In this document: positions 2,079 through 46,478 of the stretch, piece by piece
Layout: every line of letters begins with the position of its first letter
How positions within the stretch are numbered: the first letter of the stretch is position 1
Assembly: GCF_036365525.1 (NCBI RefSeq)
Contig: NC_090387.1
Location: 77,003,300-77,067,299, forward strand
DNA length: 64,000 nucleotides
Reading direction: 5' to 3'
Source: Heterodontus francisci
Lineage: Eukaryota
Notes under the pieces: generated by a model
What the model was told of the DNA's origin: nothing
Seen by the model: only the letters and a program-made list of their open reading frames with translations
Databases searched by the model: none
Program-made: the position numbers and the translations under genes

Positions 2079-4328
2079 CTTCTTTGGCCTCCTTGCATCG
2101 CGAGACAATGGGTAAGCGCCTGGAGGTGGTCAGTGGTTTGTGAGGCAGCGCCTGGAATGGCTAGAAAGGCCAATCCTAGAGTGACAGACTCTTCCACAGG
2201 TGCTGCAGATAAAATTGGTTGTCGGGGCTATTACACAGTTGGCTCTCCCCTTGCGCTTCTGTCTTTTTTTTCTGCCAACTGCTAAGTCTCTTCGACTCGC
2301 CACACTTTAGCCCCGCCTTTATGGCTGTCTGCCAGCTCTGGCGATCACTGGCAACTGACTCCCACGACTTGTGGTCAATGTCACAGGACTTCATGTCGCG
2401 TTTGCAGACGTCTTTAAAGCGGAGACATGGACGACCAATGGGTCTGATAACAATGACGAGCTCGCTGTACAATGTATCCTTGGGGATCCCGCCATCTTCC
2501 ATGCGGCTCACATGGCCAAGCCATCTCAAGCGCCGCTGGCTTAGTAGTGTGTATATGCTGGGGATGTTGGCCGCCTCAAGGACTTCTGTGTTGGAGATAA
2601 GGTCCTGCCACCTGATGCCAAGGATTCTCCGGAGGCAGCGAAGATGGAATGAATTGAGATGTCACTCTTGGCTGACATACATTGTCCAGGCCTCGCTGCC
2701 ATAGAGCAAGGTACTGAGGACACAGGCTTGATGCACTCAGACCTTTGTGTTCCGTGTCAGTGCGCCATTTTCCCACACTCTCTTGGCCAGTCTGGACATA
2801 GCTGTGGAAGCCTTTCCCATGCGCTTGTTGATTTCTGCATCAAGAGACAGGTTACTGGTGATAGTTGAACCTAGGTAGGTGAACTTATGAATCACTTCCA
2901 GTGCGTGGTCGCTGATATTGATTGATGGAGCATTTCTGATGTCCTGTCCCATGATGTTCGTTTTCTTGAGGCTGATGGTTAGGCCAAATTCGTTGCAGGC
3001 AGCCGCAATCCTGCCGATTAGTCTCTGCAGACACTCTTCAGTATGAGATTTCAATGCAGCATCATCAGCAAAGCGGAGTTCCCCGATGAGGATTTTCCGT
3101 ACTTTGGTCTTCGTTCTTAGACGGGCAAGGTTGAACAACCTGCCACCTGATCTTGTGTGGAGGAAAATTTCTTCTTCTGAAGACTTGAACGCACGTGAGA
3201 GCAACAGGGAGAAGAAGATCCCAAATAGTGTAGGTGCAAGAACACAACCCTATTTCACACGACTCAGGATAGGAAAGGGGTCTGATGAGGCACCGCTATG
3301 CTGAATTGTGCCTTTCATATTGTCATGGAATGAGGTGATGATACTTAGTAGCTTTGGTGGACATCCGATCTTTTCTAGTAGTCTGAAGAGACCACGTCTG
3401 CTGAACAGGTCAAAGGCTTTGATGAGATCAATGGAAGCAACGCAGAGGGGCATCTGTTGTTTGCAGCATTTCACCTGTAGCTGGCGAAGGGAGAACAACA
3501 TGTCAATGGTGGATCTCTCTGCTCGAAAGCCACAGGGTACCTCAGGGTAGACATGCTCAGCCAGCTTATGGAGCCTGTTTAAAGCGACTCGAGCGAAGAC
3601 TTTCCCCACTATGCTGAGTAGGGAGACTCCACGGTAGTTGTTGCAGTCACCACGGTCATCCTTGTTCTTATGATATTGGCATCGCGCATGTCCTGTGGTA
3701 CTTCTCCCTCGTCCCAGCACAGGCAAAGCAGTTCGTAGAGTGATGAAAGTATAGCAGGCTTGGCAGTCTCCATTATTTCAGGGGTAATGCGGTGCTTCCC
3801 AGGGGCTTTTCCGCTGGCTAGAGAATCAATGGCGTCACTCAGTTCCGATTTTGTTGGCTGTACATCCAGCTCATCCATGACTGGTAGAGACTGGGCTGCA
3901 TTGATGGCAGTCTCAGTGACAACATTTTCCCTGGAGTACAGTTCTAGGTAGTGCTCCACCCAGCGGTCCATTTGCTTGCGTTGGTCAGTGATCGTGTCCC
4001 CTGATTTAGATTTGAGGGGGGCGATCTTCTTGATGGTTGGCCCAAAAGCTCTCTTAATGCCATCATACATTCCTCTGATGTTTCTGGTGTCGGAGGCCAG
4101 CTGAATATGACTGCATAGGTGTTGCCAGTAGTCATTTGCGCAGCGCCAGGCTGTTCATTGTGCAGCGCTTCTGGCTGCTTTAAGTGCTATGGATGTTAAC
4201 TCGCTGGGGGCTTTCTTGTAGTTCAACAGTGCAATGCGCTTGGCGGCTATGGCAGGTTCCAGCTCTTCAAAGTGAGATTGAAACCAGTCTGCATTCTGCT
4301 TCACACGTTTGCCATAGGTGGTCATTGC
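2079..4328 (-). mobile_element. RTE-clade LINE, 5'-truncated, frameshifted
   Basis: ORF pieces encode an RTE RT (NYRGVSLLS, GFRAERSTIDM, FADDA, RWLGHVSRMEDG..RPIGRPCLRFKD). A 9-bp TSD TAATTTAAT lies at 2070-2078 and 4329-4337. Confidence 0.92.
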
Positions 4329-4539
4329 TAATTTAATAGTAGTTTGATATTGATGCAGATGGGACTGTGCCTGTGAGTCTAGATGTATTGATACGGCACT
4401 GAGTATATCTATGAATCTACTGATACTGATGCTGAAATTCTCAAATGGGCACCGCGCGTGGATACAAAATGGTGGGGGGGGGGGGGGGGGAATCAAAGCA
4501 ATTACATTATTTAAAAACACAGGCCTGACTTCTTTTTTT

Positions 4540-5960
4540 TTGGTCAGGTAAAGAACGGCTGGTAATCTCTGCCTCTGCTGCTCAAAATTCTATGAGAGCA
4601 ATGCCTTAGCGTTTGGAAAAGAAGAACGCGTATTCAGGTACAGCTGGGCAAGTAACAAATAGAAACATACGAAAGTAAAGAACGAGATGGATGAGCCACA
4701 ATCAAGACGGATCAAGGGTTCATGCAGCATTCGCCAAAACCCAGTTTGCATTGTATTACGCTGCACAATTTTCCTGTAATTAGATTATGCAAAGATAACT
4801 GTTAGTTGGCCCCTGTACATAAAATAAGTCAATGCATTCTATGTAAATGCAGCAAGAAGGAAGGAGAGAGGGCTGTAGCTGAGTTTCATGTTAGTACTTT
4901 TTTACGTGCTGGCGGTATTTTTGAATTACTCTACTTGTTGATATCTATAGGTGTATACAAAATTTGACTGTGTAAGCTTTTCGTATATCTTTTTTAACTG
5001 ATGTTCATAGAAGTGACTGAGAAAGCATAGAATTATGAATATGGGGTGAATAAATAGGAGGGCCATTAACAACAGTCCAAGCTAGTCGTATTTCTGTCGC
5101 TACCCACAATCAGCATGTGAAAACTGCTGTTTGCTGCATCTTCCATTTCTCCTCTTACCGACGCGCGTTTTAAACTTAAACCTTGTCTCCCTGTTCTCGG
5201 GGTTCAGCTGACGACAAAATGCCCCACTGTACTATTTGGATAAGAACAAGGATATCTTCGGATGACCCATACATTGGTCTTCCCTCAACACTCAGCCACT
5301 AAAATAGACTCAATTATCAAGAAATTTATTAACCTAATTTTGTGTCTGTTGGGCCTTCTACACTATTTGACTACCTATTTGCCAAGATAAGAACAATAAT
5401 AACACCCAAAAAATAACCTGTTTTTGTGAAATGCTTTCGGATGTCCATTAGGTAGGTGATTATGGAACCATGTGAATGCAAATTCGTTACTTTCCTTTAT
5501 AATAGTGAGCGTATGGATGGGTACCATCACGTTGAAAAATGCACTCCAATATCTTCATTTGTATAATTCTAACTAATTAAGATTAAATATTTCAATTAAT
5601 TTGAAATGTCAAAGGAACGTTGAGAATATACGGCCCAAACCAAAGAGTGAGAGGCTCGGTGCCAATTTAAACAGGAAGCAATCAGGGCGTGATCTCATCA
5701 CTTCGCAAACAGATACTGTCTAGTCATCAAACTCGCTGTTTCTCGCAATGAAACTGCTAAATGCTCATTGAATTAAGTGTAGATAAATTTTCATGTTAAA
5801 GTATAGTGTAATCTACATATAATAACTTCAAATAGCAATCAGGACAAACAGCTAAGGCAACACATTGCCACACAATTCTCCGACCTCTTCAAATTGGTGA
5901 TTCTTATTGGGGAATATTCCACTATTTTCACAGCTCTGATGTGTCAGCTGGCTAGCGTGG
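4540..5960 (+). repeat. Segmental duplication copy A (paralogous to 52060-52765, 57530-57714, 63343-63990)
   Basis: Colinear shared strings such as tggtcaggtaaagaacg..ctctgctgctca, ttagattat.caaagataactg, gctcggtgc..gtctagtc.tc.aac.cgctg, aaagta..gtgtaat. Confidence 0.8.
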
Positions 5961-8491: not shown

Positions 8492-9427
8492 TCCTATACC
8501 TAAATCGGGTAACTGGAAAAAGTAAGAAAAAGAGATTTTTATGTCAGAGCTTTGTGACGGAGAAAAATAATTTGTGTTAACTATGTGCTCGTTTTTTGAA
8601 GAAATCAGCAGATGAGATATGTTGTTCCAAACTAGCATACAGTCTAACTTCTGAGGACGTAGACAGGTCTTTTTAAAAACAGTTATTTTTCAGGTGGCAT
8701 TGAAAAGCAATTTTGCAGGCTTCTTGAAATGCAGGAACAAGATGAAATGGCATACTGAAATTCACCGAGTTTTATTTTTCAGGGAATTGCAAGTAAACGA
8801 GATGGTTTATAATTTCTGCTCTTCCTTGGAATTGTTTCCTTTTTGTGTTTTTCTTTGGCACTTTAGCAGCCCTTGACTTTTCCGCTTCCAGACTTGACAC
8901 ACGCACACTCTGTCTAACAGCGAAACAGCTTGGCAGTTTTCTATCGAAATGTTCTGTGCCTGCTGCCGGGCTTCCCCAATCAAAGAGTGCTTAGAGTGCT
9001 TGTTATTTTTCTGCCCCTGTTGCCGTAGAGTCTGCCTTAAGCTTAGCCCAAACCAGCTGACGAACTCTAACACTTGCAAATCTGCCCTCACTGTCCCCTT
9101 GATTAAACATTTATTTAGCTTACTAAAAATCTTTTTTTTATTTGTTTTTTTTTAACAGAACAGTCACTTTCATAACAACGATCACTTACAAAAGAACGAT
9201 TCTAGCCCATTATTTTATCGAATGTTACTGCAAAGCGGTCGCCTTCATTGATATATCACGGTATTGCCTTGTGACTTCCAGGCGAGGTGACGCTCCTAAT
9301 GTGGAACGGGCGAAGCTCCAGTCAATAAACAAGTCTATCGGTCTACTAAAGGTTTTTAACCTTCTCGTTTTAGCTCCATGATATGCTGGAAATATTGACC
9401 GGGCGAAGGGCTTATTCGAGCTAAGCT
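8027..9427 (+). repeat. Inverted paralogous copy of the receptor 3'UTR/polyA region, interrupted by the solo LTR
   Basis: 8027-8135 plus 9178-9345 is the reverse complement of ~10003-10265. 9300-9427 is also the reverse complement of 7866-7990. Confidence 0.8.
8136..9177 (-). mobile_element. Solo LTR, Gypsy (Gmr1-like family)
   Basis: Termini TGTTACGA...TCATAACA, with a 4-bp TSD ACGA (8132-8135, 9178-9181). The left end is reverse-complement homologous to the LTR end at ~19010-19071. Confidence 0.88.
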
Positions 9428-10180: not shown

Positions 10181-10186
10181 TTTATT
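10181..10186 (-). terminator. Polyadenylation signal AATAAA of the IgSF gene
   Basis: tttatt on the + strand, ~170 nt downstream of the stop codon. It is conserved in the inverted paralogous copy (aataaa at ~8114). Confidence 0.6.
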
Positions 10187-10355
10187 GAAATGATATTTAA
10201 ATAGCGCAAGGTTATTACAGTATCAGTGTAAACTAAAGAATAGAGGTATGTCATCAGTTAAACAATATAAATCTAACATTGAAGTAAGCCAGAAACGTTA
10301 CTTTGGTCTTAGAAGCTGCTAAAATACAAAGTATCGAATAATTGAATAGGAAGTA

Positions 10356-10658
10356 TTACTTATGAATATCTGATATATCACTGTAATGCGTTAATAGCAT
10401 CGTCTCGTATATATAACGCCTGAAGTTGTCATGGCAGCGGAATGCGATCAGTACACACCAGAAAAAGTGACTTCTGCATCTACATTTCCATTGCGAATTA
10501 TTGCTTGTTTCTGTGTAGACGTCTGTCATTCCTCTTTGTTTTTTGGTCTGCAACTGAGCATATTCTGTATTTCCTCCTTTATTGTTCCATATCCCAGTTT
10601 CCGCTGAACCAATCAATGTTACGTACGCCAGCTTTTTGCCGACTGTCCCTTGTTCTGC
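10356..10658 (-). CDS. Terminal exon: cytoplasmic tail with ITIM/ITSM-like motifs
   Basis: Acceptor ggctttacag|GCAG|AA. Translation AEQGTVGKKLAYVTL..NTEYAQL..DVYTET..THYSDISDIHK*. LAYVTL fits the ITIM consensus; TEYAQL resembles SIRPalpha TEYASI. Confidence 0.78.
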   Translation of the reverse strand, partial: AEQGTVGKKLAYVTLIGSAETGIWNNKGGNTEYAQLQTKKQRGMTDVYTETSNNSQWKCRCRSHFFWCVLIAFRCHDNFRRYIYETMLLTHYSDISDIHK

Positions 10659-13600
10659 CTGTAAAGCCAATGTTTGGAAATATTATTAATTGGTCGTTTT
10701 GCAAGTTTTGTGCACTGCTGCTCAAAACAGTCATCAGAAGGACACACAAATAAACTTCGATCCATCACCAGGACAAAGTCAACAGAAGCCTATGCCTTCC
10801 CCTTTCGCATGACTGTTGAGGGTTCCCAGCCCTTGCCGTGATCAGAAGTGGTGTATTTTATAGATTTTTTTTGTTGGGAAAAATAGGGAAATAGTTTTGG
10901 GCACTAAAAGAATCAAGAGGTATGAAACTAGGGCGGGAAAATCCAGTTGCGTTAGAAGATCAGCCATTCACTTATAGCGTGGCAGAGCAGGCACGAGGGC
11001 CATATGGCCCATTTCTGCTCCTATTTCTTTCGGTCCCTATGTGCACTGGCGAAAGCCTCACATTAGTGACTCAAGCTATTTGAGCATTGACAACGGAATG
11101 GATTAGAAAATGATTGTGCGTCAAGGTTGCAAACGGCACAGTTTTTTTTCTGGGAAACATCCCGAAAATACTTTCCATTTTGATTATGAGCGTGAGCATT
11201 TCTGCGTAGAAAATGCATTTGGAACAATCCAAGCTTCATGAAAAAAGATAACAGTGCTTTCAACTTTAAGTCCTAATCGAATTCTACTTCCCCCGTTTAC
11301 CTGCAGGCGGTCACTAACCCCGAGGTTTGTACTAAAATCAAAGTCTTACAGTAGATCTTACCTTCATTATTTTGCAGTCGGTATCGCGTTACAATGACGA
11401 TCATTAGTACTAGAAACGCCAGTCCAACCACCGCACATACTGGAGCCCCGAAGTCAAGGGAGTTATTGACATAATACGTAAAATTAATAGAAACATTGAA
11501 TTATTGCGAGCGTCAGATAAAAATAGGCCTCAATACAGTTTATTTATTAAACTATTGGATGCCTTCAGTAACTCCGCAGTATAGAACGGCAAAAATAAAG
11601 CTTAAACAACGTTTCAATACCAAATATTTTTAGATATAACTTTTAAGTAACTTCTTCATCCAAAGATGACACATTCTGGATTTATCTGCGAAGCGGACTA
11701 TAAGTTTATGGATCTCAAAACAGTGTTAGGAGAGTTAGAACACGAGAGAGATCAATTTCCTATGACTTTGATCTTTCTTATTTGTTAACAGACAGCGTGA
11801 AGACATTAGATGCATTTTTCCCAAGTGTTTTTTTTTGTACCCGCACAAAAATCTGTAGAAATCGGGTAGGAATCCCCCTTCAATTATCTGAACTGTGTTA
11901 ATCAAAGTAGCAGTGTCATTCAATGGTAAAGGCGATCAACGGGCGAGGGCTTATTGATTATTGTGTCGCGGGGCAAAGAATTGCTAGCACGATGCATTGC
12001 ACCGGCTGTGTGTTGCCAAGTTAGGGGCAAAGTTTGAATGGGAGTTATGAGACAGATCCCAATAAAATGCGCTGTGGACTGGAGACAAAGTTGTCAAGGA
12101 GGTAAATTTCGGAACTCTGCACTGCAAGTAGCCAAAAGCCGGGTTAGGAATCGGGAACGGCATTGCGAAAAGCCCGAGTGCAAGCAACGTGACTGCAGCT
12201 CCTGGTCACACCTTTGGCGCAAGGAGAGTAGGCAATGGCAAAGGAAAAAAAAACAATTTTATAGGGAAACACAAGGAACTGAAAAATATTAATAATTAGG
12301 CGAGGAAAAACAAACGGATAGAAAAGATAAACTCCTATTTATGATTATTATGAAATAAATAAATGAATTTGAAAGTAAATACGCTTTGATTGTATTTGCG
12401 TGCTGGGCGATATAATCCGGTTTTATAACGCATCAAGTTCAATTCAAATTATGCATTAAAACATGAATTTAACAACTTAGTTGATATTTCTCACGAGGTT
12501 TCTGCGGATTAGCTTCATAACAATTAACACCTACAATGCGTACGATATATCTCTTTGCGATTTTAACAGTAGCTAACTCACCTATTTGGACTGTTTGCTT
12601 CGCGCCTTGTTTTAGTTTCGAAACAGTATGGGAAATGAGAACTGGAGTCTTCAGAGAGATATGAGAAACCGAACAGGTATAATTGATATCGCTCAGGACA
12701 GGTTGCGTCTCAACCAAAGAGCTAGAAACTTCATACAGTCCCTGACTGTTCTGAATTTTAACGGTATGTATTCCTAACGTAGTCTCGACTCCATTTTTAT
12801 ACCAAATGAGGATGACATTATCCGGATAAAATGCAGCCGTTTCACACTCAAGAGTCAAGGAAGCAGATGAATTCCCTTCAGGGGTCCTGGAGACAATATT
12901 CAGTGGGGTTGGGGCCACTACAGAACGGAGAAAGAACAAAGCCGTGTTACTAAGCGCCATCGAGAGAAACTAAATATAATTCTGACTTCCGTTCAGTCCA
13001 TTTTATTATAATAGCACCATTCAAAAGCCAGTCTCCTGTCCCTTTTATGTTATTCACAACATCTACAGCTAAAAGAATCCATATCTCGAAAAGACAGCGG
13101 CATCTGTTCAATTTTATATGCGATATTAAGTCTAAGACCTGGGCAGACAAGCCGGAACGATTTGTTAATCAAAGCATACCAAAGAATTAAGTCAGCAAAC
13201 CTGTGGAGCCAGCTTGCGTTGAGTCGTTCCGTCTTTGTTAAGCACAAATATACAGAGCCTATCAATCTGCATTTGATGATAAAACGAGGGTCTTAGCCGG
13301 TATCAGACAGATTTCACAACTGACGCACCGACGCATTGCAATTGGTGAAATCAATTAAATTCTGTTGAACCTCAGGAGGTTTCAGCAACACAATTCCTCT
13401 GTGTTCTATTTACTGGAGATCACTGAGCTTACGGCGCTGTGTCCTTCAAGCTCCAGTTTGCTGGGTGAATCCGTTCATCATCTATTAGTTGCACAATGAC
13501 TTTCAAATCAGTGACGCTAACAATATGTAAGAATTAATGTCTGGAATGTTAAACGGCAAAGACAGCGATAACGGTAGACAGGACATTAAAACGGGCCAGG

Positions 13601-16600
13601 AGCCGCGTATATCTTGGGAGAGACGCACTAAGAAACGATTTCCAGCCAGGTGTACACTTGGAGATTCAGTTATCAGACGTCTGGAGTATAAATCGCATTT
13701 GGAGTTATAGCCCAATTGGTTAATATTGATGCAATTTGCAGTATGCTGCGTGCAACATTGAATATCTAATTATCATTCCTTTCCAGAAATCAAGAATATG
13801 CAATTTAAGTTATTGCGAAATGTATAATACATGATTATACTGCTAAAATCGGTAAAATAAACCGTCATAAAACATCCCAGTTTATGTTCGATATATTTAC
13901 TATCGTCTTGCTTTCCTATATTTCAGACTTACCATATACAATTAGATGTGATCCGGTTCCATTTCCTTGAACTGTACCCTGATGGATCACTGCGCAGTGA
14001 TAGACTCCAGAGTCTTGGAAAGTCGTGCTCAGCAAATGAAAGAAACCTCTCGCTTTATTTTCCAGACCAAATCGCTTTCTCCTGTCTGGTTTTGTGTGCA
14101 AGTATTCATTCTCGCCCTGTTTCCACCAATGCACTCTTACGCTGGAATGGTCCGGAAAGATGGGGAATGCGCAGTAGAAGATAATTTCCCTCCCTCCAGC
14201 TGCAGTCACTACTTTGGGCGTTTGAGTCACTTTGAACGAAATGTGGTACGCAGCTGTGAGAAATATATTCAAATGTAAGTTACTTGCATTACATACGACA
14301 CAAAGATGGAAGAGAGAAACTGTTCCCTAGACAATGGAATTACGATTTACTAAATGAGTGCGGAGCTACTTTGGAAGCATTTTGTGAATTGAAGTATCTG
14401 GAGAAATTAATAAAGAGTTACCAGCATGAATAATTCCTCTAAGAGTCAGGCACAGACAAATCATACTCGCTGACATTCTGAGCTTTGAATTCAACTGATG
14501 ACTCTGCAGTTACTGCGAGTTTGCAACTGCTAGGAACTGTTTTCGGTTTGTTTTCTATGACATACGTCGCAGTGACGTTTGACATCCTGTAACCGCGGCT
14601 CAGGAATTAAGATTAGTTTGTTAAGTGTTATTGTCTAATTGCTATACTTATTCCATTATTCATCTGGAATCACACGTGTCACGGGCAAGAAAGATTAAGA
14701 GAATGTATTTGACTTTCAAATGCAGAATTGAATAATATCCGTGTTGCTTCCTGACAAATCATAGATTGCTTACAGCACAGCCGGATGGCAATCAGCCCGT
14801 GCTCTCTATGCCGGCTCTTTATAATAGCTACTCAGCTCGTCCCAAGCACCACCCCATCATCAACACCACCAACCCCCACCCCACCTCCCATCCCCACCCC
14901 GTCCTTTTCCGTAGCCTTGCATTTTTCTCTTCAGATGATTATTCAATTCCCTTTTGAAATCCACGAATTATTGGCATTCACTGCAATCGTAGTGCATTCT
15001 AGATCCAAACCACTCGCCCGCATAAAAACAAAATCCTCAAGTCGCCTTTAGTTCTTTTGCCATTCACCGTAAATCAATATCTTTTGGTTCTCTACCCTTT
15101 TGCCATTGGGAACAATTTCTCTCCATCTACTTTGTCCCGATCCCTCATGATTTTGAACATCTCCATCAAATCTCCTCTCAACCTTCACTTCTTGAAGGAG
15201 AACAGTCGCAGCTTCTCCATTCTATGCACGTAAATGAAGTTACTCATCCGTGGAACCATTTTCATGAATCTTTTCTTCACCTTTTCTGATGGATTCACAT
15301 CTTTGCTGAAGTGTGGTCTCCAGATTTGGGCACACTACTCCAGTCAAGGCTGAACCAATGGGTTACAGAAGTGCACCATGCCGAGGGTCCTGCATGCCAT
15401 AGTAACCAGTTTCTAACCTTCACTGCCACCTTCAACGATTTGTGCACATATACCCCCAGGTCCCTCTGATCGTGCACCCATTTAAGAATTGTATCCTTTA
15501 TTTTATATTGCCTTTCCAGTTCTTCCTACCAACATGCATCTTCTTCACACTTCTCTGCACTAAATTCTATCTGCAACGAGTCCGCCCATAGCAACATCAG
15601 AATTCAGTGGCGGGCAGGCAATTAACTGCCCGCACGTCGGGGGATGTGGTCCCTGTTAAGGGACAGGATCCCGCCCAAGAACGCCGGCCAAACAGAGGCC
15701 CACAGCTCAGCAGTCCCAGCAGCTCTACCGGGAACGGTGGTCCCTGCTCGTACTGCAGGAGCCCCGGAGCAGTAGCCATGGAGGAGGCCCAAGAAGGACA
15801 GGCTATCAGGGCCAGTCAGGCAGGCTCCTGCGAAGACGGTGGGGGTGGGTGTCTGTCATGAGTGCAAGGGGGCGGTTCATTCAGCCGTGGCAGCCATAAG
15901 GTGAGGGCCTCCGTGGGTCAAAGCGGGCCCTATCAGGAGGGCCGCCTCTCACTGGTAAAATACTCGTGGTGGCAGGAAAAGTTGTTTAAGTTGTCCTTAA
16001 TTGGTCACTTAATAGTTGGTGACCTTCTCCACCCAGGTAAGATTCCATGGCATCAGGACAGCGACGGGTGCTCCACCACAGCTTTTAAATTAATTCATAA
16101 AAGCATTCGTCCCGCTTTAGCGATTCAAATCTCACTTAGGAAGATTTATATATCACTGTTGATGTAAATTAGAAGTACAAAATCAAAATGACGTTTGCTA
16201 AAATTGTACCTGTATAATAGCCAGATTATAATTGTTTAATCGTTCGTTGAAGCTTGAAAGTGAAATATATCTTTATGCAATGATATTCTCATGTTGTGGC
16301 TCATCTAGACACCTTTATAATTTTGTATTGTAATGTGAACGGTGACAGTTAGGAATATCAGTTAGAACGAAGCACTGGTGATGGGCCTTGACTTTCGCAA
16401 CTATTTAAATGTATCAACTATCATTTCTGCCCTTTATTTGCAGCCCATCATTCTTATCTTTGTTTAAGTAGAAATGGGTAAACTGGACAGACACAAGAAC
16501 ACAAGAAATAGAATCACGATTAGACCATATGGCCCATAGAGCCTGCTCCACCATTCAATACGATCATAGCTGATCTTAGGCTTAAACTCGACTTTCCCAC

Positions 16601-19600
16601 CCATATCCCTTGATTCCCTGAGAAACCAAAAATCTGTCTATCTCATGCTTAAATGTATTCAACGAAGGAGAATCCACAACCCTCTGGGGTAGAGAATTCC
16701 AAAGATTCACAACCCTTTGAATGAAGTGATTTCTCCTCATCTCAGTCCTAAATGATCGGCCTCATATCCTAAACCCCTATGTTTTGCATTGCCTGACCAG
16801 CGGAAACAATCTCTCACTCTCTACCCTATCCAGCCCCATCCGAAACTTGTATGTTTCAATGAGATTTCCTCTCGTTCTTCTAAACTCCAGAGAATATAGG
16901 CCCAATTTACACAGTCTCTCATCATAAGACAACCCCCTCATCCTGGGGATTTTAATGAACCTTCACTGTACCACCTCCAATGCAAATATAGCCTGACAAT
17001 GAAGCAACCGTGTAAGCAAATGATTTCATTACAGCCGAGACAGGGAGCCGCGTCAAGTATTCAATTTAAATAGACGAACACAAACTCCAAGATATGAGAT
17101 TGATGAGGAGCGAAAATGTGCAAGCTTATGTAAGGGCCGAGAAGCAGATGCAGAGAAACAATGTGCTAGAATTGCCACAGGCTTCAGGATCACGGCCACC
17201 GAAACAAATGGAGACCCCGAGCCTGCACTTGCCCGCAGCAAGAGTGCCTCAGCAACCTTTAGGGATGCGGCCTCTTAATTGGCTGCAGTCATGTTCACCG
17301 TCCTATTAAAAACGGCAGATGGGCTCTAAGTGCTACAGGCTCAATAAGAACGATGGGCAGCTTTGGAACCTCAGCAGCCCCAGTGGGATAGGTGGGTACT
17401 GTTGAGGATGTTGTTGTGGATGCGAGGGAGCCGCAACATGAATAAAATCTAAGATGTCAGGTCCATCAGGATGGAATGGAACCTGGCCGCTGGATCAGGA
17501 TAGGCCAAGATTGCAGTCTTTGGCTCCAACAGCCTCCATTGATTTGGCTGTCTCTGCAAGCAGTGGGGGCCATTGCACTGGTAACAAAATGCCGATAAAG
17601 TTGAAAAAATCCCCATAATTGGGGCCTTAACCAGCGTAATTGCCTACTGGCCTCCGTCGAGCAAGCAGATGATCGGATTCCTAGCCCACCCCTGGGAAGG
17701 ATTCGCGGTCACGGGAATGCATCGGGCAGCTGTTCGGACGTGGCTGATCCGTATTTTCCGGGCTCCCCGGCCTCCAGGCCCACCATCACTGGGAGGCAAA
17801 ATTAAGCCCAATGAGCAGCAACGCGGAGTTCACATTTATGCGATACTTACGTATTCAGGCAGGTGCTGACTTTGAGTGTGTATTACACACTTGATGCTTC
17901 GAGCATCAATTCACAAACCAGCAAAACAACTATGTAACAATATTTCCAATCCGTGGCTTCACACAGAGGAACAGCACCTGACAAGTCGAAATACGTGACA
18001 GTAGATTTGATTACTTCCGAGAATACAGAGTTATCTAAAAAAAAAAGCTCAGACTATTCTGAGCTTTGGCGAAAATCCGAAGATAGAATAACAGAGGCCG
18101 TCTGCAGCGATGTAAGAATCAAATAGTTAAGTGTAATTTTCGGTAGGAAGGTCATGTTATCCATATATATATAGATTGTACGGCACTATTATTTCTGCAC
18201 GTTATGTAATTACCAACAATCTGGCACGGCACACATTTTAACATTGTATTCTAGAATGCAGTAACAGTTATTACTTCTAATCATTTATTATTTTTCAATC
18301 AGTAAAGAAATGTATACAGGAAAACGTGAAATTTGGAGATATTTTCACATTAGCTCTGCATCCATTAACAGAACAAATTAAACAAGGGTGTAATTCTAAA
18401 GGTGTATAGACAGAGCAAATAGGGAGAAATTGCTCCCAATGGGAGAAAGGTAGAGGGCACCAACTAAAGGTGATTGTCAAAACAATAAATGGTGGCATGG
18501 GAGAAACATTTTTTTTTAACGGAGCGAGTGGTTAGGATCTGGAATGCAGTGCCTGAAAGTATGGTGGAGGCAGAGTCAATCAAAGCTTTCAAAATAGAAT
18601 GGGATGCATATCTGGAAAAAAAATGCAGGACTATGGCGAAAAGGTGGGGGTTGGGGCATTTGATAATTTTAACACTTGGATACCTCAGCCACATGGAACG
18701 TAACCCACAAAGTTACTTTATTTATTATTTATTCTTAAGAAACAGCTAATTTTTTAAAACATCATTCTTTTTAAAACGGGTTAACCATTGATTTTTGAGT
18801 GTATGGATGTGAATGGGGGTGTTAGATTAAAATAAGAAATTATCAGGTCTATTGACATACGTTTATCTGAATAGTGTTTAAGATTTAGTTTTAATGAATA
18901 GGTAATTTGTTGTTGTCTAAAGACCTGGTTTGGTCTGTTTGATTCTGGAGGTTACTAGAGTGTTTCATTTGGGTGATTTCAGGTTGGGTAGGAGAACATT
19001 AATAATATGCAGTGATTTGTGGAGAGATGGGACTGAATTGACAATGCATTGCTCCCATCTTTTGGAATCATATTAATTGCTCGTCTCTGAAATAACATAT
19101 AAATTGTGGTCTTGTGGCTGGCATCATATTAATTACTCTCGTATCTAGATTCATATTAATTGGAGACTTGATTGTTGGGATCCAAATCTAATGCCAGATA
19201 TGGAAAAAAAGAAAAGGTTTCGTGTGTAATAAGGTACAGTCTTTTCCACCAGAATGACACCAACAGTTGCAACAGCTTTTTTTCTGGGAAAGGATAATGC
19301 GTCCCTCAGTGACTTGACAACTTTAACTAAGAAGAAACTAAAAGAATTGGCGGACAAATTGGGATTAGAATTGAAATCAGCTGCCAAAAATCAGTAATTA
19401 TTGACATAATAGCCCAAAATCTAAAATTAGAAGAAGAGGAAGAAGATCGTATGTCAGAGAGTGATGCAGTTGAATTGGTTAAGATTCAGTTAGAAACGAA
19501 AAAAGCTGAGCAGGAAAATGAAATAGAATTAAGAAGACTTGACAAGGAAAAAGAAAAAGAAACAGCAATAGCATTGGAAATATTTACGTTTGAATATCAA

Positions 19601-22600
19601 AGAGAAAGTGAAAAATAAGAAAGGGAATTTAAATTAAGAGAGATGGAGCCAGTAGTCTTGAGGGGTAGTCTTGAATCTAGGGGAAATTCTGGTCAAGAAG
19701 AATCTGAATTCAGCTCAGGGCCCAGCAGAAAGCTGTTTACATTTATACAAGCTGTTCCTAAGTTTGTGGAAATGGATGTAGAGGCATTTTTCATATAATT
19801 TCAAAACATAGCCAAACAAATAAAATGGCCAAAGGAATCCTGGACACTGCTGATACAAAGCAGGTTGATAGGCCAGGATCATGAAGTTTATGCCAGGCTT
19901 CTTGAAGAGGATTCTGCAAATTATGAGATGGCAAATTAAGCTATTCTCGTATGAATTGGTCCCTGAAGCTTACTGTCAGAGGTTTCCAAACTTATGGAAA
20001 TTAATTTTGACCGTTGAATACTGGCAATAAAGATGGAAACTGAATATGAGAAGCTTTGAGAATTAATTCTCTTGAAAGAGTTTAAAAAATCAATTCCTTC
20101 AGTTGTAAGATTTCATGTTGATAAACTGAAAGTTTTGAAAGCTAGGCAAACAGTGGAAATTACTGATGATTTTGTGCTTGCGAATAAGCCAAAACCTTTT
20201 GTCCATCATCCCCATAAACACAAGAAAGATAGAAAGTGGGAGTGCAAGGAAGGCAAGTAGCCAGGGACAAGAAAGAACAGCGGGGTATTCCCCAGGATCA
20301 CGTCAGCAATTAAGAAAAGAAGGTGTTTAGGGTAAAAGTGAGGTTCGCAAGCCAAGGTGTTATTATTGCCACAAAATTGGTCATCTTCATTCAGAATGCT
20401 GGAAATTGCGAGGTAAACCCTTGGGACATGATGAGGTATGCAAAGCTAATGCAGAGGAAAAGACTCTGCCTGACAGTATAGCAGACCAGGCTATAGCTTT
20501 AATGGCAGCGGTAAAACCAGATACAGTAACTGAAATGAGTGTGGAGGTTAAGAATAAGCTACCTGAAAGATATAATGAATTATTGTCCATGTCCTGTAAG
20601 TGAGGCAGGGAAACCTATCATTATACACAGGGATACAGGAGCAACCCAAATACCCTTGCTGGAGAAAGAGATTTCGTTTCCACCAGAGAGCACCTTGAAT
20701 GCGAAGTTTTAGTTAATGGAATTGGCCGGAATACCTACCAGTAACTTTATATAAAATTATGCCCAGACAGTTACTGGATGGTAACTGTGGGAGCTTTCCA
20801 CAGTTTGCCAGTAGAGGGGATTGATCTACTCCTAGGAAATTATATGGCCGGATCAAAAGTTCAGTTTCCCCTATAGTTACAGAGAAACCAGGTGAAGTTA
20901 GGGAATCAGAACAAGTGCCAAGAATATTTCTTGCATTTTTAGTCACCCGAGCAATGGTTAAAGAGGCTCAATTGTTGGAGGTAAAAGTGGCACCGTAACA
21001 GATAGCCAAGTACCAGAATCCTTATTTGAGGATTTAGATAATCCAAATGAGATGTTTAACAGATCTTCTATATTCGCAGCCCAGCAAGCTGATCCAGAGT
21101 TATACCGAATGGCACAGATGGCTCTGACAGAAGCTAAGACGAAAGGAGGTCCAGTAGGCTATCATATGGCAAACAGGTTTTGAGGAGGAAATGGAGACCG
21201 CCTCATAGACCTGCAGATGAAGACTGGGCAGTTGTTGAACAGATATTGGTACAACCTAAATACCACCAAGGATTATTAAGGTTAGCACATGACATTCCTT
21301 TTGCAGGACATAGGGGAATTCGGAAGGCCAAATCACATATAGGTGAACATTATTACTGGGCAGGTCTTACAAAGAATGTGAGACAATTTTACAGGACATG
21401 CCATACATGCCAAATGGTGCAGAAACCGCAACCTACCATAAAACCGGCACCACTACTTCCCATTCCAGTGATTGACAAAACATTTAGTAGGGTCTTGGTG
21501 GACTGTGTAGTACCCTTGCCAAAAACAAAAGTGGGACATAAATACATACTTACTATCATGGATATGACTACTCGATTTCCACAGGCCATTCCTTTGAAGA
21601 CAGTTGCTGCTTTAATAGTATTAGAAAATTCTTTACAAGATATGGGTTACCACTTAAAGTTCAATCGGATCAATGGTCTAATTTCATGTCTAAGATATTT
21701 CAAGAAGTCCTGGGCAATTTGGGCATTAGCCATTTGAACTCTTCAGAATATCATCTACAGTCACAGGGAGTTTTAGAGAGGTATCACCAAACTCTCAAAA
21801 CAATGATTAGAACATACTGTCACGAATATCTGTATGGCTGGGATAAAGGACTAGACTTTCTTTTATTTGCCAGCATTGACCCACTGAGTGAGTCTGCAGT
21901 CTTCGGTCCTTTCGAAGTGATTTACAGACATGAGACAAGAGGTCCTCTGGAACTGACAAAAGACAGATTCTTGGAACAAATGAATGAATCTTCGATACTG
22001 GACTATATATATGGCTGCAATTCGCCAGTGGTCTTGATGCCTAAACCTAATGGGTTGGCCCACCCTTGCATAGACTACAGAGAAGTCAATGCGGGAACGA
22101 AGGCAGAGTCCGACCCAATTTCTCATTTCGAACACTGTATGGACAGAGTGGGCAACGTAATGTGTCTTAACAAGATAAATGCGTCGGAGGGATACCGTGT
22201 AATTCCTTTGACACACCAGGATAAGGAAAGGTCAGTTTTTATTTTACAGGATGGGGCTTTTCAGTATCAGTTGATACCACACCGGTTAATGTGTACTCGA
22301 GAGTCTTCTTAGAGGATAATTAACCCAATAGTGGCCAGTGTTCCTAGCTGTGCAGTTCACCTGGCTGAGGTGATGTACTGTAGGGGCGCTTGGAAGGAAA
22401 ACATGAAACAACTGGGAGACTATGTTTACAATGCTTCCTCTGAATCCAGCCATTGCTTCTCATACTCCCTTCCAATGTTTTATTTCTGTGCAGCCTGTAG
22501 GAATCTGCTGAGTTCCCTCTATATATGGCGCCTGCCTTTTACCTGCCCGAAATTCCTCCCATCCGCCACTGGCTGGCTCTCACGCCTACCCACCATTAAT

Positions 22601-27119: not shown

Positions 27120-29409
27120 ACTGGGGGAGCATTTCATGGATAGTGACCATAACTCTGTAAGATTTAAGGTAGTTATGGAAAATGACAAAGAGGGACCGGA
27201 AATAAAAGCATTGAATTGGGGGAAGGCCGCTTTCGATATGAGAAAACAGGATCTGGCCAAAGTGGACTGGGAGCAGCTACTTGTAGGAAAGCCTACACCA
27301 GACCAGTGAGAGTCATTCAAAAAGGAAATAGTGAGAGTTCAGGGCCAACATGTTCCCATAAAGGTGAAGGGTAGAACCAACAAGTCCAGAGAACCATGGA
27401 TGTCAAGGGATATAGAGTATTGGATAAGGAAAAAAAAAGGAGGCTTATGGCAGATTCAAAGCATTGAAAACAGCGGAGGCTCTAGAGGAGTATAGAAAGT
27501 GTAGGCGCGTACTTAAAAATAGTAATTAGGAGAGCGAAGAGGGGACATGAAAAAACACTGGTGGGCAAGATAAAGGAAAATTCCAAGGCATTTTATAAGT
27601 ATATTATGGGCAAGAGGATAACCAAGGGAAGAGTTGGGCCCATTAGGGACCAAAGTGGCAATAAGTGTGTGGAGCCGGAGGACATAGGTGAGGTTTTAAA
27701 TGATTACTTTTCATCTGTGTTCACTGTGGAGAAGGATGATGTAGGTGTAGAGATCAGGGATGGGGATTGTGATATAATTGAACAAATTAGCATTGAAAGG
27801 AAGTATCAGCTGTTTTAGCGGGCTTAAAAGTGGATAAATCCCCAGGCCCAGATGAGATGTATCCAAGGCTGTTGTGTGAGGCAAGGGAGGAGATAGCAGG
27901 GGCTCTGAAACAATTTTTCAAATCCTCTCTGGCCACTGGAGAGGTACCAGACGACTAGAGGACAGCGAATGTGGTACCATTATTCAAGAAGGGTAGCAGG
28001 GATAAACCAGGTAATTACAGGCCAGTGAGTCTTACATTAGTGGTGGGGAAACTATTGGAAAGAAATTCTGAAGGCAGGATCAATTTTCACTTGGAGAGGC
28101 AGGGATTAATCAGATATAGTCGGCATGGCTTTGTCAGGGGGATATCATGTCTAACTAACTTGACTGAATTTTTCGAGGAGGTGACTAGATGTGTAGATGA
28201 GGGTAAGGCAGTTGATGTAGTCTCCATGGACTTCAGTAAGGCTTTTGATAAGGTCCTGCATGGGAGATTGGTTAAAACGGTAAGAGCCCATGGGATCCAG
28301 GGCAATTTGGCAAATTGGATCCAAAATTGGCTTAGTGCTAGGATGCATAGGCTGATGGTTGAGGGTTGTTTTTACGAATGGAAGCCTGTGACCAGTGGTG
28401 TACCACAGGGATCGGTGCTGAGACCCTTGCTGTTTGTAGTGTACATTATTGATTTAGACATAAATATAGGAGGTATGATCAGTAAGTTTGAAGATGACAC
28501 GAAAATTGGTGATGTCGTAAATACTGAGGAGGAAAGCCTTAGATTACAGGACGATATAAATGGGTTGATAAGATGGGCGGAGCAGTGGTAAATGGAATTT
28601 AATCCTGAAAGTGTGAGGTGATTCATTTTGGGAGGACTAACAAGGCAAGGGAATATACAATGGATGGTAGGACCCTAGGAAGTACAGAGGGTCAGAGGGA
28701 CATTGGTGTACCTGTCCATAGATCACTAAAGGCAGCAGAACAGGTAGATAAGGTGGTTAGGAAGGTATATGAGATACTTGCCTTTATTAGCCGAGGAATA
28801 GAATATAAGAGCAGGGCAGTTATGATGGAGCTGTATAAAACGTTAGTTAGGCCACAGCTGGAGCACTGTGTACAGTTCTGGTCACCGCACTATAGGAAGG
28901 ATGTGATTGCTCTGGAGAGGGTGCAGAGGAGATTCACCAGGATGTTGCCTGGACTGGAGCATTTCAGCTATGAAGAGAGACTGGATAAGCTAGGGTTGTT
29001 TTCCTTAGAGCAGAGAAGGCTGCGGGGGGACCTGATTGAGATATACACAATTATGAGGGGCATTGATAGTATAGATAGGAAGAAACTTTTTCCCTTAGTG
29101 GAGGGATCAATAACCAGGGGGCATAAATTTAAGGTAAGGGGAAAGAGGCTTACAGGGGATTTGAAGAAAACAAAATTCACCCAGAGGGTGGTTGGCATCT
29201 GTAACACACTAGCTGAAGGGGTGGTAGAGCCAGGAACCCTGACAACATTTAAGCAGTATTTAGATGAGCACTTGAAATGCCATAGCATACAAGGCTATGG
29301 GCCAAGTGCTGGAAAATGGGATTAGAATAGATAGGTGCTTGATGGCTGGCACAGACAGGATGGGCTGAAGGGCCTGTTTCTGTGCTCTATAACTCTATGA
29401 CCCTATGAC
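27120..29409 (+). mobile_element. CR1 3' half (endonuclease end, RT, tail)
   Basis: Starts at EHFMDSDHN; has DFSKAFD, SGVPQGSVL, FEDDTK and a (ctatgac)n tail. Confidence 0.92.
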
Positions 29410-30929: not shown

Positions 30930-33530
30930 AGAGGGAGAATAGCAGTAGGCACATGGGACAGCACCTCCTTCATGCTGCCATCCAAGTGAAACACCATCCT
31001 GACTTGGAAATATATCGCTGCCGCTAACTCTGGACGAGCTGACAAAGGCCGTCGAGTCTTTCGAGACGAGTAAAACTCCCGGGAGTGACAGCTTACCGGT
31101 CGAGTTGTACTCGGCCCTGTGGGACTGGGTCGGCCCGGACCTGTTGGAAGTATACGAGAGTATGCTCCTGGCCGGCAGCATGTCAGAATCCATGAGGAAA
31201 GGCATCATCATCCTCATTTACAAGCAGAAGGGGGAGAGGGCAGAAATCAGAAATTGGCGGCCCATCTCACTGCTTAATGTTGATTACAAGATTCTGTCCA
31301 AAGTCATAGCCAGTCGAGTCAAGTCTGCTCTGGAGTTGGTGATTCACCCCGATCAGACCTGTACTGTACCCGGCAGGAAGATCTCTGATAGTCTCGCGCT
31401 ACTCAGGGATACGATCGCCTACGTACGGGACAGGAGGGTGGACACCTGCCTCATCAGCCTGGACCAGGAGAAGGCTTTTGACAGGATATCGCACACCTAC
31501 ATGATGGACGTGCTTTCCAAAATGGGGTTTGGGGAGGGAATCTGCAATGGGATCCAACTGCTCTACACAAACATCAGTAGCGCAGTCTCAATCAACGGGT
31601 GGGAATCGGAAAGTTTCCCGATCAAATCTGGAGTCAGACAGGGCTGCCCTCTGTCCCCGGTCTTGTTTGTTTGCTGTATTGAACCCTTTGCTGAGTCTAT
31701 TAGGAAGGATGCGAGCATAAGAGGGGTGACAATCCCAGGCAGCGGAGGCACTCATGTCAAAACCTCCCTGTACATGGATGATGTCGCCGTTTTCTGCTCA
31801 GATCCGCTGTCCGTGCGCAGACTGATGAGCATCTGCGACCAGTTCGAACTGGCCTCGGGAGCCAAAGTTAACCACGGCAAGAACGAGGCCATGTTCTTTG
31901 GCAACTGGGCTGACCGATCCTTTGTCCCCTTCACCGTCAGGTCAGATTACCTGAAGGTGCTGGGGATATGGTTCGGAAGGGCCGGGGCGTGCACCAAAAC
32001 ATGGGAGGAGCGAGTAGCCAAGGTACGACAAAAGTTGGGCATGTGGGGGCAGCGATCTCTCTCCATTGTGGGTAAGAACCTGGTCATCAGGTGCGAGGCG
32101 CTCACGTTGTTGCTCTACGTGGCGCAGGTCTGGCCCATAACCCACTCCTGCGCCGTGGCAGTCACGCGAGCCATTTTCCGCTTCATCTGGGGATCTAAAA
32201 TGGACCGGGTCTGGAGGGACACGATGTTCAAATCTCAGGACAAGGGCGGGAAAAATGTACCCAACGTGGCCCTCATCCTGATGACCACCTTCGTGTGCGG
32301 CTGCATCAAGTTGTGTAGATCCCCAGTACGCAAACTCCAAGTGTCACTACGTGCTGAGGTTCTATCTGTCCCCGGTGTTGCGAAGGATGGGCCTGGTCAC
32401 ATTGCCGCGGAATGCTCCATGCAGTTGGGCGGAGCCGTACCACCTATCCTTCATGGAGCAGTTTCTGCGGGAAAACACTTTTGACCACCGGTCCATCAGG
32501 CAGTGGTCTGCACAGAATGTCCTCAAGGCCCTACGGGAAAAGGAAACGGTGGATCATGTCGGATGGTTCCCCGAGCAGACCGTCAAAGTCATTTGGCGGA
32601 ATGCCTCATCACCAGAACTTTCAAACAAGCACCAAGACGTAGCTTGGCTGGTGGTGAGAAGGGCCCTCCCCGTCAGATCCTTCATGCACACCCGAAGTCT
32701 CGCCCCCTCCGCACAATGCCCCCGCGTTGGCTGTGGTGGGGAAGAGACAGTCGCCCACCTCCTCCTGGAATGTGCCTTTGCAAAGCAGGTGTGGAAAGAG
32801 ATGCAGTGGTTTTTGTCAAGTTTCATCCCAAGCAGCTCTGTAACACAGGAGTCTGTGCTCTACGGGCTGTTCCCAGGGACGCACACCGAGACAAACATCA
32901 ACTGCTGCTGGAGGACTATCAATTCGGTGAAAGACGCCCTTTGGTCTGCCCGAAACTTGCTGGTCTTCCAGCGCAAAGAGTTGTCCACCACCGAATGTTG
33001 CAGACTGGCACATTCCAAGGTCCAGGACTACGTGCTGAGGGACGCACTAAAGCTTGGGGCAGCCGCAGCAAAGGCTCAATGGGGAAAGACCACAGTGTAA
33101 GATTCCCCCACCAAGCTGGACTGAGGGGCTGGATCAATGGGAAACCCCTCGAACTGTATCGGTAATATTCTCAATTGCTGTAAATGTAAAACTGTAATTG
33201 ACATGACAATTGTGAAACAGAAGGGTTGGGAAGAAACTCATGACAGTATTGAAGGAAACTGATCTCCCTTGCAATGTTTGTATTTTTTGGTGCTGTTTGG
33301 AAACTGTTTGGCAATGTAATTTTTACAGATTTTTATGAATAAAGTATATTTTGGAAAAAAAAATCGCTGCTCTTTCATTGTTGGTGCTCAAGTTCCTGGA
33401 ACACCCAGAGGCAATTGCACCTTTACCACATACATGCAGGCAAACAAGGGATTGGCAACCACCTTCTCGAGGGCGATCAGGGGTGAGCAATAATGCTGGC
33501 ACTGTCAGCAACCCGTCTACATCCCGTGAA
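30930..33530 (+). mobile_element. Old LINE 3' end hosting the Tx1 insertion
   Basis: catgggac..ccatcctgacttggaaatatatcgctg continues after the Tx1 poly(A) through caccttctc..gggc..aataatgctggc..catccc. Confidence 0.6.
31022..33362 (+). mobile_element. Tx1-clade (L1 group) LINE, 5'-truncated ORF2, young
   Basis: NWRPISLLNVDYKIL, LDQEKAFD, GVRQGCPLSP, YMDD and C-terminal CPR..C..ETVAHLLLEC. One frameshift at ~32315. AATAAA + poly(A), with 8-bp TSD ATCGCTGC (31014-31021, 33363-33370). Confidence 0.93.
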
Positions 33531-41578: not shown

Positions 41579-43140
41579 TGATGTTCTTGGGATTGGAGTG
41601 AAGTTTAGCCAAGTTTACTATATGATACGTGATTCAGAAAATGAGGCAGAAGTAGCAAGCTGTTGAACATAACGGAGTCTGCTTTCCAAAACTGTAAACA
41701 ATAAACTTAAAAATAAATAGTTCACTTCATAGCATAGTCACTTACGTATGGTAGGAATATACTCTCAAGAGTAGGATGTCTCTGGCATCTAATGCAACAT
41801 AGATGTGATCTCATTTGACTCATGTTCTTCATCTGAGATGTCAATGTCTGAATCAGGTTCAATGCTTACGAGTGGTACTTTCAGGGCATTGAAGAATGAT
41901 GCATTTCTTGTGATTATTTGTGATCCATGCTTAGCAGTGATCATTGATCCTTTTGTTGGTCTCCACAAATGGCTGGATATCATACAGAGTTGTTTGTTTT
42001 CCAAGATGACCATCAGATTTCATAAGTAATTTATCTCCAGGCTTTAGCAGTGTAGCTCTAAATTTCATGTTTTGGTTTTCATTTACTTTAACTTGATTCT
42101 TCTGTTCGCGATCACGTTTGCGTACAAATTGATCAATAGCTTTGCGAGTTAGCTCAGGTAGACATGTGCACATAGGATGTGCAAAGCAGAGTGTAGCTGG
42201 AAGTTTTCCAGTAGTCGAGTGAGTAGTCACCTGTAACTACGAAGAAAGTGACATAGCCCTTACTTCCTTGACTTGTCCTTAGTTGTAGCTGTATGTGTGA
42301 CTTTTTTCAAGGTTCACATAAAGCTCTCGACTTCTCCATTAGCTCATGGCCAACGGGGTGTGATTTTCCAATGAGTGAACCCTAGGTAGTTCATTAACTT
42401 GCTGAAGTCATCACTGTTGAATGGGGTCCTTTGCCACTTCTTATTATTCGAGGGATTCCAAACAAGGCGAAAATATGGTCAAGCTTTTCAATGACTGTTT
42501 TCCTTGAAGTTGACATAATTAATTCCACAATTCGGAATCTGCTGTAGGCATCCGTGGCAACAAGCAGGTGTTCACCTGTGGGCAAATCCAGAAAGTCAAT
42601 GCTAACTTCAATCCATGATCCTGGAGGTGCTTTGGCCATCTTGAGAGGAACATGAAGCTTTGACATTCTAGTTGCTTGACATGGCAAACATTGGTTGATT
42701 TTTTGTTCTACCATATGGTCAATTCCTGGGAACCATTTATTTTTCCTAATGAGTTGTTTGGTTTTGACTATTCCCTGGTGTCCTTCCTGTGCTCTGTCAA
42801 CAAAACATTCCCTCAATGAGTGTGGAATTACAATACGGTTGTTGCATAATACAGTATCAGATGTGGTTGTAACAGCGAGCTCATTTCAAACATTGTGAAG
42901 CCCTTGTACTGTGTGAATGATTTCACTTGTAGATGCTTTCTCGATCACGTTTCCAGTTTTGTGATTCCATAGTCTTCATACATAATTGCAAACTTTGGCA
43001 CCACCTTTGGCTTATGTAGGTAAGATGTTGTTCGGAAACATTTTCCTCATGACTAGCAGGAGCAACTGTTGGCAATGCATGTTGCAAAACGTTGTCCACT
43101 GAGTTACGTTTGCCTGGAAAACACTCAACATGGAACTCAT
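41579..43140 (-). mobile_element. Gypsy LTR retrotransposon fragment (integrase + probable 3' LTR 41579-41778)
   Basis: EGHQGIVKTKQLIR..WFPGID..CLPCQ..W.EVSIDF..DAYSRF. On the minus strand, a TGTTG...ACATCA-bounded ~200 bp segment with agtaaa. Confidence 0.82.
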
Positions 43141-46094: not shown

Positions 46095-46478
46095 AGGCAA
46101 AGATGAGAAATGAATTAGGTTTTAAGCAACTGATAAGGATGTTGTGGGGGAGAGAACAAAGGGGAAGGTATTTGTTGGGGCAGGAGAGATTAACTAACAA
46201 AGCTGTCCTGGGACAAAGGCAAAGCATGTGTTAATGCTTGTGGTGAAAGACAAATCATTAGTTGAGAGAGACTGTTAATAACGGAATAATCAGCACGTCT
46301 GAGTACATGAAAAGCAGACACATGGTTAAAAAAGTAAAATATTAATAAAAAGGCCAGTCATGCTCTGAAGTTATTGAACTCAATGTTCAGTCTGCAAGGC
46401 TGGAGAGTGCCTAATCAAAAGATCAGGTGCTGCTCCTCGAACTTGACTTGAAGTTCACTGGATGGCTGAACTTGGCCA

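Follow-up and report, generated by a model that had tools for sequence, protein, structure and literature searches.

The 64,000-nt stretch of the horn shark (Heterodontus francisci) genome analysed here (contig NC_090387.1, positions 77,003,300 to 77,067,299; hereafter the window, from the first letter of which all coordinates are counted) carries on its minus strand a gene that is probably a transcribed, tail-less derivative of an inhibitory V-C1 receptor, being either decoy-like or in early decay. The gene is, judged by its sequence, a member of a large, unnamed cartilaginous-fish family of non-rearranging V(J)-C1-transmembrane (TM) receptors, most long-tailed members of which possess a cytoplasmic immunoreceptor tyrosine-based inhibitory motif (ITIM) and an immunoreceptor tyrosine-based switch motif (ITSM). 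In the horn shark gene the exon homologous to the ITIM/ITSM exon is present at the 3' end, but not in the frame that the observed mRNA uses, and no middle cytoplasmic exons are recognisable.

Gene structure and the reading frame of the tail

The gene consists of five exons, all borders of which are GT-AG according to sequence reading and translation, and which, joined from window coordinates, give a 289-residue protein identical to the RefSeq protein P0001 of Heterodontus francisci, machine-named "tapasin-related protein-like". The leader exon (14422-14476) encodes MSASMICLCLTLRGIIHA, with one base of the following codon at its end (phase 1; donor gtaact); its product is identical to the N-terminus of P0001, with paralogue leaders matched by tblastn as well. 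An earlier note on this DNA had placed the exons at 10356-14253, and these exons are real, but the leader is situated just outside that span.

The V exon (13933-14253; phase 1 at both ends; Pfam V-set, E 1.4e-8) encodes a compact V domain, with 58 residues between its two cysteines, and a built-in J-like G strand, GNGTGSHLIV, directly after which follows a gtaagt donor. No heptamer of a recombination signal sequence (RSS; CACAGTG/CACTGTG) is present in the 73 nt 3' of the exon. As V and J-like strand reside in one exon that ends in a GT donor without an RSS, the gene is considered non-rearranging. The C1-set exon (12582-12917), reading FYPDNVILIWYKNG ... YTCSVSH, is recognised by Pfam with E 1.1e-10 (42 bits vs a cut-off of 21) and encodes the only C1 domain of the gene and of the entire 64-kb window. 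The TM exon (11362-11439) reads V-CAVVGLAFLVLMIVIVT-RYRLQNNE and ends in phase 1 (..GAA G before the gt of the donor), and its membrane-spanning segment IVCAVVGLAFLVLMIVIVT holds no charged residue. The intact V exon with J-like strand and without RSS, the single C1 domain and the uncharged TM segment, all of which had been read from the letters beforehand, are thus borne out by Pfam, by the sequence and by identity with P0001. A cysteine at the outer TM edge (P0001 residue 238, ~11436-11434, in the context xGCAxxGL), common to most family members, is kept here and might, by analogy with antigen-receptor chains, form an interchain disulfide.

The RNA evidence derives from three runs, the only ones listed, of one sample of unknown tissue, each of which contained next to none of the sampled sequence words. 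A 204-nt RNA contig with zero mismatches, the one informative spliced contig obtained from them, joins 12582 to 11439 (GT..AG) and runs past 11362 into GCAGAACAAGGGA, that is to the acceptor at 10660/10659, as its loose end CAGAACAAGGGA is compatible solely with the acceptor ttacag at this place. No RNA contig for the leader, the V exon or the 3' end is among those listed. The proposed spliced transcript is thereby confirmed at its C1-TM and TM-terminal junctions, but with the tail out of frame.

The motifs LAYVTL (10631-10614), TEYAQL (10568-10551) and THYSDI (10391-10374), which had been assigned to the tail of this receptor, indeed share one open genomic frame (10359-10682), which is however not the frame of the contig and of P0001. 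In the observed mRNA and in P0001 alike, 11362 is joined to 10658, and the translated part of the terminal exon (10579-10658, with the stop codon at 10581-10579) encodes the tail GRTRDSRQKAGVRNIDWFSGNWDMEQ. With a phase-1 end of the TM exon and a terminal exon that starts from 10658, LAYVTL and TEYAQL fall out of frame, and the cytoplasmic part of P0001 consists of 35 residues, ending in the above tail, without a tyrosine motif. The stop codon that ends the short tail lies within an AATAAA hexamer (10583-10578; CAA TAA AGG), and another AATAAA is found at 10186.

The ancestral frame of the terminal exon (10497-10652, minus strand), which includes LAYVTL, TEYAQL and DVYTE, is homologous to the ITIM/ITSM exon of the family, as translated in this frame it matches P0010 with E 3e-7 at 49% identity and P0007 with E 6e-6 (tblastn). 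Beyond the position of the family stop the frame is read through from 10496 to 10356. This read-through includes THYSDI, which is located 40 codons beyond the family stop and has no homologue in any family member according to tblastn and a DNA alignment with a relic copy described below. By this comparison THYSDI is a chance motif beyond the ancestral stop rather than the tail motif it had been taken for, and 10356-10496 is probably 3' untranslated region.

The V-C1 family of cartilaginous fish

Full-length relatives of P0001 number 21 at E <= 1e-10. The V exon alone matched 136 proteins among 1.84 billion representatives (80 of them at E <= 1e-10), with the strong matches all being V-C1 family members, and V and C1 are both present in about 90 clusters at 50% identity. 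All named V-C1 members are from cartilaginous fish, that is sharks, rays and chimaeras of the genera Heterodontus, Heptranchias, Mustelus, Scyliorhinus, Stegostoma, Hypanus, Hemitrygon, Mobula, Leucoraja, Amblyraja and Callorhinchus. Outside of cartilaginous fish only weak matches, to turtle multi-V proteins and a Polypterus CD79b-like protein, are observed, and bird proteins do not occur among the named non-chondrichthyan matches of the V search. The paralogue names are throughout machine labels (SIRP-like, tapasin-related-like, CD276, NCR3LG1-like, class II beta-like, immunoglobulin (Ig) lambda-like), and a literature search found no paper on this V-C1 family. With respect to novelty, the family is therefore present in the databases under inconsistent machine names alone and undescribed under a consistent one, but the horn shark copy has already been modelled by RefSeq.

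The cytoplasmic plan of most long-tailed members is ..RLQNNE of the TM exon followed by GKQ..EELG.., then ..VHYAALDL..EERTVYAQ, and finally xKQG..LTYA[TA]L..TEYA[QE]L..YSEAxxK and stop. Typical members thus display four or five cytoplasmic tyrosines (in ..VHYAALDL.., ..TVYAQ.., ..LTYA[TA]L.., ..TEYAQL.. and ..YSE..), with LTYA[TA]L as ITIM and TEYA[QE]L as ITSM in most of the long-tailed ones, and these motifs predict that typical family members are inhibitory receptors. At the family level, the earlier proposal of shark V-C1 receptors with ITIM and ITSM tails consequently stands. A SHP-recruiting tail in the gene itself does not, as the middle exons are missing and the ITIM/ITSM exon is out of frame in the annotated product.

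In its ectodomain P0001 conforms closely to the family. Its V domain shows the family marks WWKxGE..YL, QDSGVYxC and the J-like strand GNGTGSxLxV (alignment A1), and its single C1 domain those of the C1 start V(P/A)PTPLK, of FYP..LTWYKNG and of YTCxVSH, with 46-71% identity to the C1 domains of relatives. All 12 invariant positions of the family ectodomain are conserved in P0001, as are the nearly invariant ones (alignment A1). An AlphaFold model of P0001, built on a 30-member family alignment (predicted local distance difference test, pLDDT, 85.7), superimposes best in its V and C1 domains on Ig kappa light chains and T-cell receptor (TCR) beta (Foldseek E ~1e-16), with a VIA-align Z of 15.2 over ~194 aligned residues (model residues 24-225). 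The modelled ectodomain fold would accordingly resemble an Ig light chain or a TCR chain, in agreement with the light-chain/TCR-like V-C1 layout proposed beforehand.

At least seven family members (P0001, P0008, P0012, P0019, P0098, P0104 and P0136) form a cluster on one horn shark chromosome of 99,651,266 bp. In the V-C1 tree, P0001 groups with the ITIM-bearing P0006, P0007, P0008, P0009 and P0018 in a clade with 95% support in the Shimodaira-Hasegawa-like approximate likelihood ratio test (SH-aLRT), comprising genes of Heptranchias, Mustelus, Mobula and the horn shark. With 0.28, P0001 has a longer end branch than the horn shark paralogue P0008 (0.15), and its identities to all relatives are 5-7 points lower.

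The family also includes the short-tailed members P0005, P0013, P0016 and P0017, which possess an arginine at the outer TM edge and are presumably activating. The occurrence of such short-tailed members beside ITIM-bearing ones would be the precedent for regarding also the horn shark gene as the activating partner of an inhibitory sister, signalling through an adaptor with an immunoreceptor tyrosine-based activation motif (DAP12/FcR-gamma). This is highly improbable, as P0001 has no charge within or at the edge of its TM segment, where the short-tailed members have the arginine, and as the tree places it among ITIM-bearing genes. The ITIM-bearing members likewise have no arginine at this position, and its absence from P0001 argues that the gene is a derivative of an inhibitory gene and not of the arginine-bearing type.

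Loss of the tail and competing explanations

The last intron (10659-11361, 703 bp) is the place where the middle cytoplasmic exons of the family (GKQ..EELG and ..VHYAALDL..TVYAQ) would be expected, and neither a permissive tblastn search nor the family hidden Markov model (HMM) found a match to them there. Right after the used acceptor the ITIM frame reads A-E-Q-G-T-V-G-K-K-L-A-Y, which is colinear with x-K-Q-G...L-T-Y of the family, and an AG likewise stands at the position of the degenerate relic copy in the window that corresponds to the used acceptor. Based on these two observations the used acceptor is taken as native and in phase 0, and the sequence most likely indicates that this is where the terminal exon natively starts. 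The frameshift would then be the consequence of losing intervening exons with a combined length of 3n+2 nt. Alternatively, caag at 10650/10649, 11 nt downstream of the used AG, could be the native acceptor (in phase 1), with the same outcome. It had been the first choice for the ancestral acceptor and was dropped in view of the colinearity of A-E-Q-G with x-K-Q-G and of the relic AG.

In the mechanism envisaged, the ancestor would have been an inhibitory gene of the SIRP-like V-C1 cluster with an ITIM/ITSM tail. Upon loss of the middle cytoplasmic exons, the phase-1 end of the TM exon would have become spliced straight to the terminal exon, which would have put the ITIM/ITSM codons out of frame, with translation ending after the 35 cytoplasmic residues. 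The predicted product would be displayed on the surface with an intact ligand-binding V-C1 ectodomain and without SHP recruitment. It may serve as a decoy or competitor, without signalling of its own, for the ligand of the inhibitory sister receptors, with an outcome that by analogy would be like that of SIRP-gamma; otherwise, the gene may be in early decay. A tail-less form of an inhibitory member would thus arise here by exon loss and frameshift, and not by way of a stop codon or a charged TM residue.

Several points weigh against a tail-less derivative. The RNA support is thin, consisting of one low-depth contig from one sample plus the RefSeq model, and the ancestral exon borders are deduced from aligned proteins plus a single degenerate relic. 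An AG located 4 nt downstream of the used acceptor (10656/10655) would restore the ITIM frame, and this frame is open over 108 codons, which is mildly unusual, with a chance of ~0.04, as estimated by shuffling, that the part past the family stop is open.

It is through this second AG, for example, that a functional inhibitory receptor, the LAYVTL and TEYAQL tail of which recruits SHP-1/2, could be produced. The ITIM frame is intact, homologous to the signalling exon of the family, retains three of three tyrosines at a Tyr-to-Tyr spacing of 21 residues (vs 24 in the family) and is open as far as 10356. Such a receptor is nevertheless unlikely, because the sole transcript contig and the sole RefSeq isoform take the upstream AG (tttacag), which is the first AG 3' of a plausible branch region and most probably the native acceptor of the family, because the first two tyrosine motifs of the family are missing regardless of the frame, and because THYSDI is located beyond the ancestral stop. 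In addition, a search with the 98-aa ITIM-frame tail retrieved no matching database protein, that is none of 54-171 aa that shares three 5-residue words with it, although this is weak evidence.

A combination, in which the acceptors at 10660/10659 and 10656/10655 serve as a frame switch that mostly delivers a tail-less and sometimes an ITIM/ITSM receptor with the same ectodomain, is quite improbable. If true, one gene would encode a paired receptor by means of alternative 3' splice sites 4 nt apart. Irrespective of this, ITIM motifs taken from genomic open reading frames can mislead if the splice phase is left unchecked.

Besides the tail, two further splice sites differ from those of the family. 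The C1 donor lies 24 nt further 3' than the inferred donor of the family and adds GAKQTVQI, as the contig end at 12582 and the family alignment A1 demonstrate, and the TM acceptor is located 36 nt further 3' than that of the family. Upstream of the used TM acceptor the intron harbours the stalk relic VNNSLDFGAP (11440-11470, minus strand), which is in frame with the TM exon and covered by tblastn alignments of P0006, P0007, P0008 and P0010 (E down to 7e-11), and which, on reading of the sequence, is not preceded by an AG. Both the C1-donor and the TM-acceptor shift preserve the frame.

Taken as successive lesions, the tail loss, the TM-acceptor loss and the C1-donor shift could also mark a transcribed pseudogene in early decay, the protein of which would be functionless. 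These three splice departures, a terminal branch about twice as long as that of P0008 together with the lower identity to all relatives, the low depth of the RNA contig and the presence of relic tail exons of another dead copy 3 kb away speak in favour of it. A pseudogene is still rather unlikely, as the leader, V, C1 and TM exons form an unbroken reading frame that the splice shifts maintain, none of the invariant or nearly invariant residues of the ectodomain is lost, the AlphaFold model is confident with a normal V-C1 fold, and the transcript is spliced correctly.

The relic copy of the family is situated on the opposite strand, ~3 kb upstream of the leader of the gene. It comprises a middle cytoplasmic exon (relic exon B, 17033-17113, plus strand; ..EPRQVFNLNRRTQTPRYEIDEERKCASLCKG) and a last exon (17965-18126, plus strand; ..KSKYVTVDL..SSDYSEL..EAVCSDVRIK and stop), with several tyrosines replaced, and no V, C1 or TM exons belonging to it are found in the window. 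Relic exon B was considered as evidence on phase and is unusable, having no clean donor. Intron DNA of the gene at 10660-10729 is 76% identical, in inverted orientation, to 17963-17895 beside the relic last exon, and a second inverted block, 10931-11029 vs 16602-16503, is 71% identical and overlaps a dispersed repeat (~10979-11029 in the last intron). The two blocks are spaced by 202 bp in the gene vs 1293 bp in the relic, where the middle exon intervenes. This difference in spacing would fit a deletion from the gene, although weakly so given the overlap of the second block with the dispersed repeat.

A 33-bp core of the repeat (10997-11029), matched at 90-95% by many RNA contigs, some of high depth, and found again in the window at 37138-37183, is probably a piece of a dispersed repeat that is abundant. 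The 3' region of the gene has short inverted duplicates with 80-84% identity (9351-9426 vs 7944-7866; 10190-10264 vs 8100-8026), at which tblastn detects no coding relic; the duplicates fit a tail-to-tail relic that had been noted separately for this DNA. No other immunoglobulin-type exons and no other cellular gene were found in the 64-kb window, most of which is retroelement debris with long reverse transcriptase- or integrase-like open reading frames on both strands, e.g. at 2179-4589, 21138-22309, 27959-29322, 31003-33097, 42397-42885 and 46470-48341.

Comparison with known receptor systems

The search for remnants of the precursor of antibodies and TCRs has been directed at non-rearranging V(J)-C1 genes in cartilaginous fish (PMC12227049, PMC10751288). 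A V(J)-C1 layout and a J-like GxGS/TxLxV strand are features that the gene has in common with Ig light chains and with TCR chains. On the other hand, V and J are here contained in one exon without an RSS and do not rearrange, the C'-C'' region is short, and the gene belongs to a family of single-pass membrane receptors with ITIM/ITSM tails. Among elasmobranch genes, UrIg and UrIg2 are alike in being non-rearranging and of VJ plus C1 type; UrIg2 has 9-11 C domains and is linked to the antigen-receptor complex, and UrIg has several and is MHC-linked (PMC12227049). The many C domains of UrIg and UrIg2 rule out that the gene is one of them (PMC12227049); they also have no ITIM-family tail, whereas here a single C1 exon is followed by the TM exon. 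The high rank of UrIg2 (9dmx) among PDB sequence matches results from a score summed over three C domains. PRARP, going by the mention of Fu et al. (2019) in PMC10751288, are non-rearranging immunoglobulin superfamily genes of bony vertebrates.

With tapasin-related protein, after which P0001 has been named, the gene has a C1-set domain in common. Kinship with tapasin was rejected, since the Pfam matches are generic ones to V-set, C1-set and Ig domains and do not include a tapasin-specific region, so that the name is an automatic label. Also set aside were I-set proteins such as titin and Robo, which top the V-only profile search of the PDB through summed multi-domain scores that do not reflect kinship; this crowding by I-set proteins arises because the V domain is compact.

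In SIRP, as in the family, a C1-set domain comes after a non-rearranging V domain that has a J-like strand. The profile of the family aligns with V and C1 of SIRP-alpha (2wng_A) in one stretch with 66.7 bits (whole-chain E 1.1e-31), and domain 3 of SIRP-alpha is the best single C1 match among those shown (47.8 bits). Over V plus C1, Ig light chains score equally (69.2 bits), and the V-C1 stretch of UrIg2 reaches 60.0 bits. With the V-only profile, the best single-domain matches over the full V are VNAR, TCR and CD79b V domains, with SIRP V not among the top matches. The V domain, which is compact with its 58 residues, is hence by profile no closer to SIRP V than to those of VNAR, TCR and CD79b, and this is one difference from SIRP; another is the presence of one C1 domain vs two in SIRP (V-C1-C1).

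A further common feature of the two systems is a set of inhibitory, arginine-bearing short-tailed and tail-less forms, corresponding to SIRP-alpha, -beta and -gamma, respectively. The canonical family tail alternates xxYA.L and xEYA.x, which we take to be the same order as that of the four SIRP-alpha tyrosines. The horn shark copy, with its uncharged TM segment and short motif-less tail, is alike in outcome to SIRP-gamma; a difference is that the tail-less state would here have arisen through exon loss and frameshift. Without a claim to membership in SIRP, the term SIRP-like thus fairly describes, as far as sequence comparison goes, how the family is built and probably also how it works.

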